A stretch of DNA of 63,902 bases, the filler included, from Olpidium bornovanus S191 (taxonomy: Eukaryota; Fungi; Olpidiomycota): the NCBI GenBank assembly GCA_017911155.1. It is 27 parts of 27 records of this genome, joined end to end, with 100 filler letters (N's around TTAATTAATTAA, not from the genome) between each part and the next. Parts side by side here need not be neighbours in the genome. Positions count along the whole stretch, not along the records: positions 62,736 to 63,902 come from JAEFCI010008148.1; 26 more parts are not named here. The stretch is one strand, 5' to 3'. The number at the start of each line of letters is the position of its first letter. The first letter of the stretch is position 1. Both the position numbers and the translations under genes were made by a program. Shown piece after piece: positions 5,084 through 63,902 of the stretch. A model generated the notes under the pieces. That model searched no databases and was not told the DNA's origin. It saw nothing but the letters and a program-made list of their open reading frames with translations.

Positions 5084-6835
5084 ATGTCGCAACCAGCAGT
5101 AGTGGCGTCGTGCTTCGCCCACCGCTCGTCAAACCCCGCGGTGCAGGTCGCCACGGGCTTGGCGGGCGCGCGCCGGGCGATGCAGGCCGAGCTCCGCGCC
5201 ATGCTCACCGTTCCCCGCGACTACCTCGAGGCGATCGCGAGTCACCTCGTCGACGAGATCGACCGCTGCGCGCAGGCCCCCGGCCGCACGCTGGCCATGC
5301 TCCCGTCGTTCGTCACCGGCCGCGTGACCGGCCGAGAAGTGGGCACGTTCTACGCCATCGACCTCGGCGGCACCAACCTCCGCGTGTGCGAGGTCAAGCT
5401 CAACGGCGACCGCACCCACCTGCTCCACCACCAGAAGTTTCTCGTCCCCCAGTACGTCATGTGCGGCGGCCACAAGGAGCTCCTCTTCGACTTTATCGCC
5501 GAGTGCACCGCCGAGTTCCTCCGGAAGCGCGGGGCGGCGGCAGGCACGACCGCGGAGGCGGTTTTCGGGTTCACCTTCTCGTTTCCCGTCGTCACCGACT
5601 CCATCGACTCCGGAAGTGCGTTGCTTTTCGCCGCGCTTCCCTCAATTCTTTTTTTTTTATCTTTTGCCGCCAATTTTTTGTTCACCTGGCGGCTGACCCG
5701 CGCTTCGCAGTTTTAAAACACTGGACAAAAGGGTACAGCGCCAAGGGCGTAGAAGGCGCGGACGTCGTCCAGCTTCTCCAGGAGGCTTTCTCCCGCCGCA
5801 ACCTAAAGGCCAGAATCGTGTCCATTAACAACGACACTGTCGGCACTCTCGTTGCGCACGCATACGCGAATTCCAAGACGGAGATGAGCGTCATCATCGG
5901 AACGGGTTCCAACGCTGCGTATTACGCGCCCATGGACAAACTCACGAAATGGAAGGGCAGCAAGGTTGAGTCCGGCGAGATGATTGTTAACATGTATGTG
6001 CCGGCCGCTCGAACGTTGTGCACCTGGCGACGTGTTCTGCCGCTGACCGCGTTTGACCCGGACTGGTTGTTCGCCGGCTCAGTGAATGGGGGTCCTTTGA
6101 CAACGAGCGGAAGATCCTGCCTCTTACCCAGTTTGACAGGAAGCTCGACAGGGAGTCGATCAATGCTGGTCAGCAGATATTCGAAAAGGCCATCGCCGGG
6201 ATGGTATGATCCGCTCGGCGCATTTTCGGTGGTTGCTGTTGGGCGTTATTTGTGGTTGCTGTTGGTCTTTTCGTGCTGACCGAATGTCACAAATGTCTGA
6301 CCGCTTGCAACAGTACCTGGGCGAAATCGTCCGCAACATCATTGTTAGCCTCATCGACCAGGGTCTTCTCTTCGACGGACGGTCGGCACCGGCTCTGAAC
6401 AAGCCTTACGGCTTCGAAACGTCGCTGATGTCGCAAATCGAGATCGACGACACGGCGGACCTGGTGTACACCCGCGACATCCTGGAGCAGCACGTCGGCG
6501 TCCAATGCGACACCACGCTCGAGGAGCGGAAGTGGGTCCAGGAGATCGTCCGGCTAATCGGGCTCCGCGCCGCGCGTCTCTCCGCCGCCGCCATCTACGG
6601 CGTCTTGCAAGCGGGCGGGCAGAAGGACGAGTGCGACGTGGGCGTGGACGGTTCCCTCTTCCAGCTGTACCCCGGATTCAAGCAGCGCCTCGGCAACACG
6701 CTGCGCGAGCTGATGGGCGAGGAGCGCGCGTCCAAGCTCACGGTCTCGCCCGCCCGCGAGGGTTCGAGCGTCGGCGCCGCCATCATCGCCATGCTAGCGT
6801 CGAAAGGCGCGGTCGCTCGCGGTTCGAGCTTGTGA
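5084..6835 (+). CDS. HXK: Hexokinase, 4 exons (about 5084-5614, 5711-5993, 6082-6202, 6312-6835)
   Basis: Motifs MLPSFV, AIDLGGTNLRV, GFTFSFPV, WTKGY, NDTVGTL, IIGTGSNAAY, EWG, GLRAARLSAA, GVDGSLF, GSSVGAA; introns are GT-AG. Confidence 0.96.
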
Positions 6836-7410
6836 CCCCCGACCGCCCCCCACCAATCCCTTATATAACATCAGTTCGCGCTTAACTATCTTTTACCCCT
6901 TCACTGTACATATTATTCACGTTGTTTTTTGCGGACGAGGAAAAAAGAATTTTTTTCTGGTAGGGGGTGTGGGGGGGGGGACGTGGCCGGTAACACAAGC
7001 TCGCGAGTAGAAAAGAAGTAGGAACGGGAGAAAAGTTAAGAGCGCGCAAATCCGCGGCCCCGGCGTGTTTCTGCGCTCTGCTTTTCGCTCGCCGAGACCA
7101 AAAATCTCTTGTGCCGGCCGTGGACGACCGGGGGGGTGGGTGGAGGTCCCCTCGGGCGTCGGCCTTTTTTCGGGCCGTTTTCCCCGCTTTTGGTCTCTCT
7201 TTTTTAATTTTTTTTTTATTTTTTTTATTTTTTTTTTTATTTTTTTTTTATTTTTTTTCTTTGCTTTTCGTCCGCCGCCCGGGGGTCTCCCGGAAGCCCG
7301 GGTGCCCCCCCGTCGACGACAAAAACTTCTTGCAACAACGCGGTTCGATCCTGGCAGAGATGGCGAAAACAAAAAAAAAATGCGGGGTGCGCAGCAGCGG
7401 TTGCTCGCGC

Positions 7411-7442
<32 letters not shown>

Positions 7443-7451
7443 GAGAGAGAG
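7411..7451. repeat. (GA)n microsatellite
   Basis: About 20 GA units with one interruption. Confidence 0.9.
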
Positions 7452-8016
7452 GGGAGGGGGGTTGTTGATTTTGAAGAACGGCAGTGGCCGAAGAAGAACG
7501 AAGGTGCGAAGACGAGGACGGCGCTTAAGCGGGAAGACCGGGAAACTCTTTGTTCGGAGCTGTTCGTAGGCGGCTTCCCGACCTTGAGGAGCTACTTTGT
7601 CAGTCTGGTTTTTTTCACTTTGCCTCGCATTTCGACCTCGAGATTCGTTTCCGCCCTCGCAAACGCGCCTTTTCAGGGTCGTTTTTGCATGATTTTGCAC
7701 CCCTTTAGCCTGGTCCAACCTTGGGCGTCTCCTGCGGCCCCCATTGAGCGCGTGGTGCACCCCTGGCGAGCACTTTTCGCTCGGTCGCCATGGGGGCTGG
7801 TTTCCCANNNNNNNNNNNNNNNNNNNNNNNNNNNNNNNNNNNNNNNNNNNNTTAATTAATTAANNNNNNNNNNNNNNNNNNNNNNNNNNNNNNNNNNNNN
7901 NNNNNNNAAAAAACGGCAGCACGTCCCGTTGCTGCGGAGAGCTCGGTGGTGATGGCTTTTGCTTTACCGGAAGCGATCTTTTAAACACAGAAATGCGCGG
8001 AAAAGCCTCCAGTAGC

Positions 8017-8033
8017 AAAAAAAAAAAAAAAAG

Positions 8034-8123
<90 letters not shown>

Positions 8124-8130
8124 CCCCGGG

Positions 8131-8166
<36 letters not shown>
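8017..8166. repeat. Very long poly-A tract (about 100 A, a CCCCCCGGG break, then about 35 A); length may be inflated by assembly
   Basis: Read directly from the sequence. Confidence 0.8.
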
Positions 8167-8168
<2 letters not shown>

Positions 8169-8952
8169 AAAAGGAAGAGAAAAAGAACAAAAAAAGGGGG
8201 TGGGGGGTGGAAGGGAGAAAGGGGAGGTGGTGCGGAGGAAAGAAAGGAGGGGGGAAAGGGGGAAAGGGGGCGCGTGTGCCTGGCGTGCGATTGGAAATGA
8301 TTGCATTTGGGAAAATCCAAGAAATTTTGCACAAATCCGCACCAATGGCACGCGCACGCACCCCCGCCCTCCTCTCCCTCCCCCCCTTTTCCCCCCCCCC
8401 CACCCCCGCATTTCGCGCTCGTTAAGGGGGGGGGGAGGGGGGGGGAGGTGGGAGCGCTGGGTGCGCGTGCATGCGTGCGGCGCGCTGCGTGCTTTTGCTG
8501 CCGCGCGGAAGTGTGCGGGTGCGGTAGTGGTGCGCGGAGTGAGTGTGCGGCAAACAGATCGTCGGGAAGGGTGAGAGGGAGAGCGGTGGGGCGGGGGACG
8601 GCGCGTGGCCGCGGAAGGAAGACGAGGAAACGCCCGCTCCTCCTAAGCCCGCCGGCTGGCCCTCCCCCCGTCCCCTCTTCCCCGCGCCCTTACTTCTTTC
8701 CCCCCCCCTTTCCTCCTCCGCGTTTGGTTTTTTTTTTTTTTTTTTTTTTTTTTTCTCTTTTTTTTTCTTTTGCTTTTTTCCCCTTTCCCTTCTCCTTCCC
8801 CTTCTCCCCTCCGTCCGCCGCCGCCGCCGCCGCCTCCTCGTCCTCCTCCTTACTCTTCGTCCTTCCTCCTCCTCCTCCCCCTCCTCCTCCTACTTCTCCG
8901 CCTCCTCCTCTTCGCCCCTGCGCTGGCCCGCCCACCCTCTTCCCGCCTAACT

Positions 8953-9657
8953 ATGACCGTCTCCGTTGTCAAGCGCGGGTACGTCTCCGTTAAGGAGGAC
9001 GGGCTGAGATCATGGATATGGAGCAAGCGGTGGCTGCTCCTCCGCGAGCAGACCCTCACCTTCCATAGGAACGAGGTGAGAGGCGTCGAGACTCGGCGGG
9101 AGACGGAGGGAAGGAGGGAGGGAAGTTAAGAGAGGGAGTGAAAGAGAGAGAGAGAAAGAGAGAAAACGAGAGAGAGGAGGGAGGGAAGTTAAGAGAGGGA
9201 GGGAAAGAGAGAGAGAGAAAGAGAGAAAACGAGAGAGAGAAAGAGAGAAAACGAGAGAGAGAAAGAGAGAAAACGAGAGAGAGAAAGAGATAAAGAGAGA
9301 GACAGAGAGAGAGAGATCAAAACTTTATTTTTCGCTCGTTCTCTCGTGTTGTTTCTCCCTTTTTGTCGTCGCCGGTGGCAGCACACCTTCCAGGCCGTGT
9401 CCTTGGTGTTCTTGAAAGATGTCGAGTCCGTCAGCCGAAACGAGCTGCGGCCGTACTGGTGAGTTTCTTTCCCCGCTTCCCTCGCGGCCGTTTACCCGGT
9501 GACCAGCACGGCGCTTCCGCGTCGCCTCCTCCCGCTCTTTCCGCTCCTCCCGCTCTTCCCGCTCTTCCCGCTTTCCTGGCCCCCAGTTCAGCTGATCCGC
9601 TGGTTTTTTTTTGGTTTTGCTTGCCGCTGACCCCGATGGCGAAACTCGCGCCTTCCC

Positions 9658-9688
<31 letters not shown>

Positions 9689-10130
9689 TTTGCCCTCTGT
9701 CAGCTTCGAGCTTGTCACCAAGGATCGAACGTACCAGATATCATGCAAGAGCGACGAGGAGCTTTATTCGTGGATGGACGAGGTTTACCAGCGGTCGCCG
9801 CTCACGGGGGTGTCCAACCCGACGAACTTCGTGCACAACGTCCACGTCGGCTTCGACGCCAACACCGGCACGTTCACCGGCCTGCCTGATCAGTGGAGCA
9901 GCCTGCTGACGCGGTCGAATATCTCCAAGGAGGACTACGCGCGCAACCCCCAGGCCGTTCTGGACGTTCTCGAGTTCTACACCCGGCAAAACAAGGACTC
10001 TTTAATCTCCATGGACAACAAAAACCTCCGCTCCGCCGACGTCGACGGCGCCTCCCTCGCGAGCGTGTCCGGCCTGGGCGACGCGCATTTGCAGGTCCTG
10101 GTCCCGCCGGGTCGAGGTTCCAGCCACGAA
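8953..10130 (+). CDS. CLA4: Cla4/Skm1-type PAK kinase, N-terminal PH and CRIB region, 3'-partial (exons 8953-9075, 9382-9458, 9704-10130)
   Basis: PH: [32 protein letters not shown], then [32 protein letters not shown]: [16 protein letters not shown]. Then [12 protein letters not shown]. The spliced exons stay in frame. Confidence 0.92.
9105..9317 (+). repeat. Purine-rich tandem repeat inside CLA4 intron 1 (two ~63-nt units, then ~22-nt AAAGAGAGAAAACGAGAGAGAG units)
   Basis: GGAGGGAGGGAAGTTAAGAGAGGGAG(T/G)GAAAGAGAG... occurs at about 9113 and 9176. Confidence 0.85.
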
Positions 10131-10230
10131 NNNNNNNNNNNNNNNNNNNNNNNNNNNNNNNNNNNNNNNNNNNNTTAATTAATTAANNNNNNNNNNNNNN
10201 NNNNNNNNNNNNNNNNNNNNNNNNNNNNNN

Positions 10231-10408
10231 ACCACGAACGTCATCTTCGCCCCGTGCACACACCCGCCTCTGCGAGAGGTTAGCCTAGAAATATCGTCGT
10301 TTCAGTAGACGTGATCCGAACGGACAGCGGCAAGTGTTCTGGGCGCTCATGTGCCGGCCGACCACGGAAAGGATGGCCAAGTCCTTGAGGACATCCACCT
10401 GATTTGTT

Positions 10409-62735: not shown

Positions 62736-63902
62736 CCGCTCCGGAAACCGCTTCCGAACGTGAATGGCAAAAAAAACCGCCTGTCTAAGGCATTCTGTAA
62801 TTGCACTTCAAACTAACCGCAATTGTGGTTGATGTGCGAAAAGTCCTTGTCGTGCGAGTCCCGCATCAAAAAGATATTTTTCTCCGCGTCGTCGGAAATG
62901 CCCGAGACGTAGCTGCTCAGCCAGGTCGGTGCGCGATTGACGTCGACCTCGCGGTTGTGGATTAAGTTCGGGTCGACGGGCCTCTGGAACAGGACAGTCC
63001 CCTTTGGTATGAAATCGCGAGCGTACTGCTTGAGACCGTCGTCCATCGTGAGATTCCCGAGAGGGGTAAACTGTGCGGAGCGGCGCGCGGGAATGTAAAA
63101 GTGGTCTAACGCGGGGCTCGTCTGCGGGGCCGCCGCCGTCGCGGGATACCGCGGAGGTCCGACGCGCAAACTCGATCCGACAGAGCGGGCCGCGCGGACG
63201 AGCTCGAAGAGCGCGCGGAAGAACTCGTCGGGCACCGCCTCGAAGTTGAAGTTCACGAAAGTCGCCACCGCGTACCGGTGCTGCGGGAAGGCGTGCACGG
63301 CCACGTGCCCGGACGAGAGCGCGGCGTACGCGATTACCTCGGTGGCGGCCGCGGGATCTGAGCTCCTCCCTTGGCGGTCCTCGCCGGGTCTGTTTGCCGC
63401 CAAGCGCCGCACGAGGTCTGGGCCGTGGTTGGTCAGGTTCACGTGCGCGTCAGAATTTTCCGTTGCGACCGACACGACGGTCGCGTGGGCGCGCCCGGCG
63501 GCCTCCACGACGGCTTTCCGCAGGCGCTCCGGACGGGACAGCACGTCTGTTTCGCAGCCGAAAAACTCCCGCTGCACCGTGGAACCCCGCAGGACCGGAT
63601 CGGAGAGCCAGTCGATGGAAGCGTGAGAGTACGGCGCGTACGATTTGAGCGCTCCGGACCACGACGCCGCCGCCTCCTCGTCCGTGTGCCTGGCGAGCAA
63701 GTTGCGGAGCCAGGACGGGAGGTTAAACATGCTGAGATGCGTGTGGCCGTCGTAATGCTCGAGTTTCTCGGTGGTCCTCCGGTCGCGCGTCAGTTCCACG
63801 TAGTCGGGCGAAAGGTTCCGCGGGTCCACGATGCCGCCGCTGTCGTACATGACGTGGAAACCCACGAGCTGCGAGATCGACTGCACAAACGCGGAATACA
63901 GG
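62736..63902 (-). CDS. Tri-domain fusion: aminopropyltransferase C-terminus, degenerate bacterial-type AdoMet decarboxylase domain, SET domain; partial at both ends
   Basis: One frame, open from the window edge to 62813. APT: LYSAFVQSI..GF and KLEHYDGHTHLSMFNLPSWLRNLL. AdoMetDC-like: EFFGCETDVL..PERLRKAVVEAA..ATVV and ALSSGHVAVHAFPQHRYA. SET: QYARDFIPKGT and HINHNC, followed by a GTTAGT donor. Confidence 0.75.

Follow-up and report, generated by a model that had tools for sequence, protein, structure and literature searches.

The last segment of a 63,902-nucleotide stretch of DNA from the fungus Olpidium bornovanus S191 (assembly GCA_017911155.1), hereafter the window, carries what appears to be an internal exon of a gene for a fusion protein, in which an aminopropyltransferase (APT)-like domain, an S-adenosylmethionine (AdoMet) decarboxylase (AdoMetDC)-like domain and a SET domain follow one another on the minus strand (positions 62736-63902, from JAEFCI010008148.1). 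Judged from sequence comparison, the window gene is a divergent member of an unstudied family of APT-like/AdoMetDC-like/SET proteins of zoosporic fungi, in which the decarboxylase-like domain is predicted to be inactive. Tentatively, and with somewhat less than even confidence, we read the three-domain protein as the methyltransferase and substrate-holding partner in a two-gene module for aminopropylation and N-methylation that would operate in the secretory pathway; membership in the family and death of the decarboxylase are far more secure than this reading.

The frame runs on the minus strand from the piece edge at 63901, which cuts its 5′ end, to 62816, and consists of 362 sense codons (64% G+C) followed by TAG. 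At the base composition of the piece, the probability of finding no stop in 362 codons is approximately 6e-5, and the five remaining frames of 62736-63902 contain open reading frames (ORFs) of 40-126 codons at most. A preliminary description of this DNA had reported an uninterrupted minus-strand frame with an APT C-terminus, an AdoMetDC fold and the N-terminal half of a SET domain; all of this was recovered here, with the limits of the three blocks in agreement to within a few codons. The frame terminates as I-N-H-N-C-G-stop, the underlying DNA being AAT TGC G|GTTAGT, and GTTAGT (62812-62817, minus strand) has the sequence of a likely 5′ splice donor. The exon likely ends at 62818 in phase 1, so that its final G, together with AY at the start of the next exon, would encode the Asp of N-H-N-C-D, the form that this motif takes in the alignments of relatives almost without exception. 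We read 62736-62817 as the probable start of an intron because of the GTTAGT donor, the lack of any SET continuation in all three frames of the last 80 bases, and the drop in G+C to 52% past the putative donor; the probable intron sequence that follows the donor (62736-62811, minus strand) is cut by the piece edge, and no acceptor that would restore the frame was found within the piece. A run of eight T (GGTTTTTTTTGCC, window positions 62768-62778) lies in the presumed intron, about 40 bases past the donor. Conservation of the intron position was considered and rejected, the Spizellomyces punctatus gene being apparently interrupted at other sites according to its ORF map. Pfam matches to NNH7 (20-22 bits) and HHH_3 (12-14 bits) were under their cut-offs and were dismissed as chance.

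An exhaustive HMMER (phmmer) search of 1.84 billion representative proteins with the frame returned 17 relatives at E ≤ 0.001, of which 11 had E ≤ 1e-10. The best of these, P0001 (707 aa), is colinear with residues 1-361 of the frame at 41% identity (E = 9.8e-77), a level that no library protein exceeds; the other 16 relatives also align colinearly with the frame, and the match runs across all three blocks in P0001 and in ten further proteins at E ≤ 1e-10. An exact 38-mer scan of metagenome contigs for the source contig and its flanks returned no match. P0001 is one uninterrupted ORF on a 2.3-kb contig of a public sequencing run; the contig looks like a transcript, which would mean that the family is expressed. 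Pfam domains in full-length relatives occur in the order Spermine_synth, AdoMet_dc, SET, and the full-length architecture comprises a putative N-terminal membrane anchor, the APT-like domain, the AdoMetDC-like domain and SET with post-SET. The strongly hydrophobic N-terminal segment is present in most full-length members and, in sequences read by eye, is preceded by basic residues in several members as well as in three proteins encoded by the neighbouring partner genes described below.

Every named relative comes from a zoosporic fungus, either of Blastocladiomycota (Sorochytrium milnesiophthora and Catenaria anguillulae, ORZ39173) or of Chytridiomycota (S. punctatus SPPG_01685, Fimicolochytrium jonesii, two Gaertneriomyces, Thoreauomyces humboldtii, Cladochytrium replicatum and a Lobulomycetales metagenome-assembled genome (MAG)). 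Two-domain paralogues that lack SET were found in Powellomyces hirtus, Geranomyces variabilis, F. jonesii and C. replicatum. In a rough neighbour-joining tree, the window sequence groups with P0001, next to the two blastoclads. The preliminary description contrasted the architecture with that of ordinary fungi. Full-text searches found no description of the fungal family in the papers covered, and its annotation is generic, members being named 'hypothetical', 'SET domain-containing', 'PABS domain-containing' or 'S-adenosyl-L-methionine-dependent methyltransferase'. The architecture is not unique to this genome: GenBank has the family from ten or more named species of chytrids and blastoclads, which goes some way towards the widespread, annotated fungal family that the same description had named as telling against its proposal. 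Two database names do not fit the domain analysis: KAL7750899.1 from Sorochytrium is called a 'putative protein serine/threonine kinase', and UniRef A0A0L0HTM6, the S. punctatus SPPG_01685 protein, is called 'Spermidine synthase'.

The central block (residues 105-250; 63152-63589, minus strand) has the class 1b, that is, bacterial-type, AdoMetDC fold according to Pfam, profile comparison, AlphaFold and Foldseek, and is predicted to be dead. Pfam AdoMet_dc (PF02675) scored 36.3 bits with the whole frame and 40 bits with the segment (cut-off 25), and the family profile matched the class 1b AdoMetDC of Thermotoga maritima and Aquifex (1tmi/1vr7) over the whole domain (E = 2.7e-10). The AlphaFold model, computed from 15 sequences, had a predicted local distance difference test (pLDDT) score of 84-92 in the core, and its best Foldseek match was T. 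maritima AdoMetDC 1vr7 (template modelling (TM) score 0.86, root-mean-square deviation 1.8 Å); eukaryotic AdoMetDCs ranked lower, and human spermine synthase (3c6k) was a weak match at rank 40 through its N-terminal domain.

Residue-by-residue alignment of the frame to T. maritima AdoMetDC 1tlu places Ser197-Gly198 of the window at the self-cleavage pair Glu62-Ser63, the Gly198 codon (63308-63310, minus strand) standing at the position of the pyruvoyl-precursor Ser63. Across 19 family members, this position is occupied by Gly (16), Asp (2) or Ala (1), and by Ser in none. The Phe218 codon (63248-63250, minus strand) falls at the position of Cys83, where Cys is found in 0 of the 18 members that have a residue there; His68 corresponds to His203, kept in the window and variable across the family. 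The positions of Ser63, His68 and Cys83 were taken from the alignments, and, following the structure paper, we take these residues to be catalytic in the T. maritima enzyme. Because no pyruvoyl cofactor can form without the serine, these substitutions indicate that the AdoMetDC-like domain is a pseudoenzyme family-wide, which would neither self-cleave to a pyruvoyl enzyme nor make decarboxylated AdoMet. A family-specific insertion in this domain contains an N-L-T sequon (residues 155-157; 63431-63439, minus strand), a possible N-glycosylation site; N-x-[ST] occurs within the insertion in 15 of 19 family members.

Upstream, beyond a poorly conserved linker (residues 73-104; 63590-63685, minus strand; pLDDT <50) with an invariant Pro90 in an A-P-Y motif, lies the C-terminal segment of the APT-like domain (residues 2-72; 63686-63898, minus strand). 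In hhalign, it aligns with the last 71 columns (192-262) of A4, the APT profile built from the family (99.1% probability, E = 1.3e-18), and it contains the APT C-terminal motif Y50-D51-G-x-x-H55...F59-x-L-P. Profile A4 in turn matches Thermus SpeE 1uir (E = 5.9e-38, 134 bits) and the thermospermine synthase ACL5 (E = 1.7e-32). Direct searches with the stub gave little: no Pfam match was obtained with the first 98 residues, and the direct match in the PDB was a weak one to the last 39 residues of the Pyrococcus furiosus spermidine synthase 1mjf (E = 0.18). The cofactor-binding and catalytic motifs of the APT map upstream of the piece edge, and their state was read in the relatives. There, the APT-like domain is degenerate, with most cofactor and catalytic motifs gone: by a motif table against Thermus SpeE, nearly all relatives no longer have the glycine loop (GGG[DE]G), the acids that bind ribose and adenine ([DE]-I-D and D-[DG]-A), the D-x-x-D-P loop's second Asp and its Pro, or LYT-EFY. 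Most family members retain the catalytic loop's first Asp, and a G-x-G-D-G-G loop is found in P0001 only. The N-terminal beta-hairpin of the APT-like domain, also upstream of the piece, contains two invariant Cys (C14 and C24 in A4; G-x-C-L...C-x-x-D-E).

The frame closes with the N-terminal half of a SET domain, up to N-H-N-C (residues 259-362; 62816-63127, minus strand), which hhalign aligned with the SET profile of the relatives, A5 (probability 98%, E = 2.7e-13); A5 itself has the KMT2A SET/post-SET as its closest solved structure (E = 8e-15). Scored directly against Pfam SET (PF00856), the half domain reached 14.5 bits, under the cut-off of 22.4. The AdoMet-binding and zinc-ligand motif N-H-N-C (62819-62830, minus strand) is intact, its N99, H100 and C102 being invariant in A5. 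SET motif I reads G-L-K-Q-Y-A (residues 289-294; 63020-63037, minus strand), compared with an invariant G-x-G-Q/x-F-A in ten relatives; thus, the second Gly of G-x-G is Lys in the window, a possible weakening of its AdoMet site. A second invariant SET column is broken as well, with Met replacing Pro at about 62864-62866. In the relatives, G-x-G, N-H-x-C, E-L-T-Y-D-Y and the post-SET C-x-C-x4-C are all invariant and are accompanied by a family-specific C-terminal extension, G-x-D-W...F-x-P-H; the catalytic Tyr of ELxYDY and the post-SET CxCx4C map beyond the intron, outside the piece. Judged in the relatives, SET is the only one of the three domains that looks intact. Just before motif I, the window has a 7-residue insertion, G-N-L-T-M-D-D, which contains a further N-x-T.

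In the profile and structure checks proposed in the preliminary description, AdoMet_dc was recognized by both Pfam and fold, and the APT and SET segments aligned with the profiles of the relatives, with no direct Pfam match for APT and a score under the cut-off for SET. Its view that the polyamine-type domains are prokaryotic in type, rather than of the Spe3/Spe2 kind, is supported by the best matches, Thermus SpeE and T. maritima AdoMetDC, and the horizontal origin that it proposed for the fusion gene is plausible. A complete polyamine machine, in contrast, is not what the sequence encodes, given the predicted dead decarboxylase (Gly198, Phe218) and the APT-like motifs lost in relatives.

In 6 of 8 genomes, belonging to two phyla, the three-domain gene adjoins a gene for an AdoMetDC-APT fusion, an adjacency that strengthens the polyamine connection of the window's gene family and bears out that part of the preliminary description. 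In S. punctatus, the head-to-head neighbour of the three-domain gene encodes a protein of 536 residues with AdoMet_dc, Spermine_synt_N and Spermine_synth; the arrangement is likewise head-to-head in Catenaria, Sorochytrium and Fimicolochytrium, and in Cladochytrium, where the neighbour is annotated as APT only. In the genome of locus L015, the pair is arranged tail-to-tail, with 72 bases between the genes. The paired genes lie at 5475-7158 (minus) and 8001-10348 (plus) in locus L005, 4331-6275 and 8001-10195 in L006, 5985-7451 and 8001-10224 in L007 (Sorochytrium), 5186-7110 and 8001-11241 in L009, 5618-6577 and 8001-10983 in L011, and 7897-9358 (minus) and 6299-7825 (plus) in L015.

The partner ORFs have an N-terminal hydrophobic anchor of their own, and both of their enzyme domains appear complete. 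The AdoMetDC is an intact class 1b enzyme by its motifs (L-S-E-S-H-V-S-I-H-T-W-P-E...Y-T-C-G; 66 bits to the Aquifex enzyme), and the APT keeps every canonical motif (GGGDG, VDID, DDA, I-D-C-T-D-H and LYT-x-EFY). An origin of the pair by tandem duplication was rejected: the family APT profile scored 28 bits with one of three partners, none being reported for the other two, vs 154-161 bits with APTs of Caldivirga and Thermodesulfovibrionales, and the family AdoMetDC-like profile scored 13-18 bits with the partners vs 49 bits with the T. maritima enzyme. Since the APT and AdoMetDC domains of the two genes are not close paralogues, recent tandem duplication does not explain their adjacency. The partner APT, otherwise distant from the APT-like domain, has cysteines equivalent to the hairpin pair of the latter (G-R-C-M-L-L...F-C-E-x-D-N in the ORFs of L005-L007); such a pair could form a disulfide, which would suit a lumenal location.

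A precedent for joining these domain types exists in diatoms, as the preliminary description had stated. According to second-hand accounts of Michael (2011, FEBS Lett 585:2627), diatom AdoMetDC-APT fusions, some with a histone-type N-methyltransferase added, were proposed to make and N-methylate long-chain polyamines. Co-expression of AMDC-APT genes with diatom-specific SET methyltransferases is reported for diatoms when the cell wall is formed. Our profile search recovered two diatom-type proteins of this kind, P0090 and P0091 (AdoMetDC, APT, SET), along with AdoMetDC-APT fusions from Nitzschia, Striatella and Epithemia. The likeness to the fungal family is considerable: the same three domain types share one polypeptide, the polyamine domains are bacterial in type, a hydrophobic segment opens the P0091 protein, the same organisms also have an AdoMetDC-APT fusion standing alone, and aminopropylation followed by N-methylation is proposed in both cases. 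However, the order of the domains differs, AdoMetDC, APT, SET in P0090 and P0091 as opposed to APT-like, dead AdoMetDC-like, SET and post-SET in the fungi, and P0090 and P0091 have an intact E-S-H cleavage site, intact APT motifs and no post-SET Cys motif. The diatom proteins match the fungal profile through APT only (E = 1e-12 to 1e-16, 50-85 bits), whereas prokaryotic stand-alone APTs reach E of about 1e-39 (144-161 bits), and none of the 17 phmmer relatives is a diatom protein. Because of the domain order, the intact motifs, the missing post-SET and the weak, APT-only match, we did not assign the window to the diatom family; by these comparisons, the fungal family looks to have been assembled independently of the diatom fusions and to be set apart from proteins of the P0090/P0091 type. 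There are reportedly also 'alternatively configured' diatom fusions with a dead AdoMetDC.

For a dead AdoMetDC-like domain as such, the nearest precedent is animal spermine synthase (human, PDB 3c6k), which likewise joins a dead bacterial class 1b AdoMetDC-like domain to a bacterial-type APT; it differs in having its dead domain at the N-terminus and a fully active APT, and in having neither SET nor a membrane anchor. The best matches of the polyamine-type domains of the fungal family are prokaryotic, namely APTs of the Thermus SpeE/thermospermine-synthase type and the T. maritima AdoMetDC TM0655, but these enzymes are separate, soluble and catalytically complete. Derivation from a fused prokaryotic speE-speH operon found no support in the two APT neighbourhoods inspected, one of which has no AdoMetDC and the other AdoMetDC followed by APT. 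The closest bacterial APT, from a Thermodesulfovibrionales MAG (L012 833-3870), sits in a polyamine operon with a pyruvoyl arginine decarboxylase, a second APT and an agmatinase-type gene. The fungal SET shares GxG, NHxC, ELxYDY and CxCx4C with KMT2A/MLL1 and ASH1L; in contrast to these, it stands behind polyamine-enzyme relics and an anchor and has its own C-terminal extension.

Under the two-protein reading, the partner would convert AdoMet to decarboxylated AdoMet on site and would aminopropylate an amine; the acceptor could be a polyamine in free form or lysine residues in a secreted protein. The degenerate APT and AdoMetDC domains of the three-domain protein would act as a scaffold or hold the aminopropylated substrate, and its SET domain would N-methylate the product, both proteins facing the lumen of the secretory pathway. 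Their lumenal placement is probable, as suggested by the anchor, the two invariant Cys of the APT hairpin and the sequon present in 15 of 19 members, and a lumenal location would explain why the decarboxylase is fused to the transferase. A scaffold role for the relic domains would resemble that of the dead AdoMetDC-like domain in human spermine synthase.

Several points weigh against this reading. The function of every family member rests entirely on sequence, and so does membrane topology, which comes from sequence features alone; it is also unusual to assume that the secretory lumen has a zinc-dependent SET domain and a supply of AdoMet. The window itself covers the C-terminal stub of the APT and half of the SET, its own motifs falling mostly outside, and the neighbour is known from the genomes of relatives. 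The Lys in motif I and the Met in the Pro column could mean that the SET domain of the window is impaired, and in the window/P0001 clade, the APT-like domain may retain some cofactor binding. Finally, the neighbour was not found in 2 of the 8 genomes, Gaertneriomyces (L008) and Thoreauomyces (L010), whose members form a separate branch with the two-domain paralogues in the rough tree.

Other explanations were weighed as well. The presence of three domain types in one polypeptide, and of intact AdoMetDC, APT and SET in the diatom-type P0090 and P0091, would invite the view of a single self-sufficient enzyme, active in all three domains, that produces decarboxylated AdoMet, assembles polyamine chains and then N-methylates these. 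This is very improbable, given that the pyruvoyl Ser and Cys83 are missing from the window and from the family (19 members) and that the APT-like motifs are degenerate in relatives. A more modest bifunctional protein, in which the neighbour supplies decarboxylated AdoMet, the APT-like domain still transfers an aminopropyl or related alkyl group to an unusual acceptor and SET methylates the product, would accord with the first catalytic-loop Asp kept in most members, with the G-x-G-D-G-G of P0001 and with the strong APT fold signal (134 bits to SpeE of Thermus, a polyamine aminopropyltransferase with a role in making long and branched polyamines). Most members, however, are without the glycine loop, the ribose and adenine acids, the second Asp and Pro, and LYT-EFY, and we regard this possibility as improbable.

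A protein-lysine methyltransferase unrelated to polyamines, with the relic domains serving folding, dimerisation or AdoMet sensing and the neighbour a leftover of common origin, is a reading that we consider unlikely. It would fit a SET domain closest to histone-lysine methyltransferases and the degeneration of two of the three domains, as well as the case of human spermine synthase, whose dead AdoMetDC-like domain is said, in the paper on its structure, to be used only for dimerisation. It sits less easily with an adjacency to an intact AdoMetDC-APT that persists in both phyla and in either orientation, and recent tandem duplication would not account for that adjacency, given the scores of the family profiles, which give the best-scoring partner 28 (APT) and 18 (AdoMetDC) bits vs 154-161 and 49 for the prokaryotic enzymes. 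Least credible of all is a pseudogene or an assembly artefact: the stop inside SET, the replacement of two invariant residues (Gly by Lys and Pro by Met) and the lack of anything above 41% identity in the libraries would agree with it, but the 362 stop-free codons would rarely arise by chance, 11 relatives match the frame colinearly at E ≤ 1e-10, and the stop falls within a canonical GTTAGT donor whose phase would restore the conserved Asp.

A bolder form of the two-protein reading, which we hold to be rather unlikely, is that zoosporic fungi use the anchored, active AdoMetDC-APT together with the anchored pseudo-APT/pseudo-AdoMetDC/SET protein to build N-methylated oligo-propylamine chains in the secretory pathway, the chains being free long-chain polyamines or attached to lysines in proteins that are secreted or belong to the cell wall. 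This would amount to chemistry of the silaffin/long-chain-polyamine type, hitherto associated with silica-forming organisms, put together from prokaryote-type parts without descent from the diatom system. Until now, discussion of fusions between polyamine enzymes and SET has treated them as peculiar to diatoms and tied to silica formation; a differently ordered version of these parts is now seen in two phyla of early-diverging fungi, with a different apparent origin. If methylated aminopropyl chains are indeed made, fungal polyamine chemistry would extend past putrescine, spermidine and spermine, and a role other than silica formation would have to be explained, for example in the cell wall, the cyst coat or adhesion; the fungi of these two phyla are not known to make silica. 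S. punctatus, a genetically tractable saprobe, would then be available for enzymology that has been hypothetical in diatoms since 2011. The family also appears to be a clear case of two pseudoenzyme domains retained beside a live catalytic one. Its proteins are already in public databases, under records that mislead by calling one of them a protein kinase and another a spermidine synthase.

Some further observations concern related loci. The best match to the profile outside the family, P0035 (470 aa; E = 2.4e-40), consists of an APT with all motifs present followed directly by SET, with no AdoMetDC; it is a single-exon gene in the eukaryote GCA_014466335.1 (L002 7001-8413, L003 and L004), on a contig that also has a PTHB1/BBS9 cilium gene. 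Two other genes stand close to the pair in Sorochytrium (L007), possibly by chance: an ornithine decarboxylase antizyme gene (PF02100; 13230-14043, plus strand), some 3 kb downstream of the three-domain gene, and, immediately past the partner, one for an OPT transporter.

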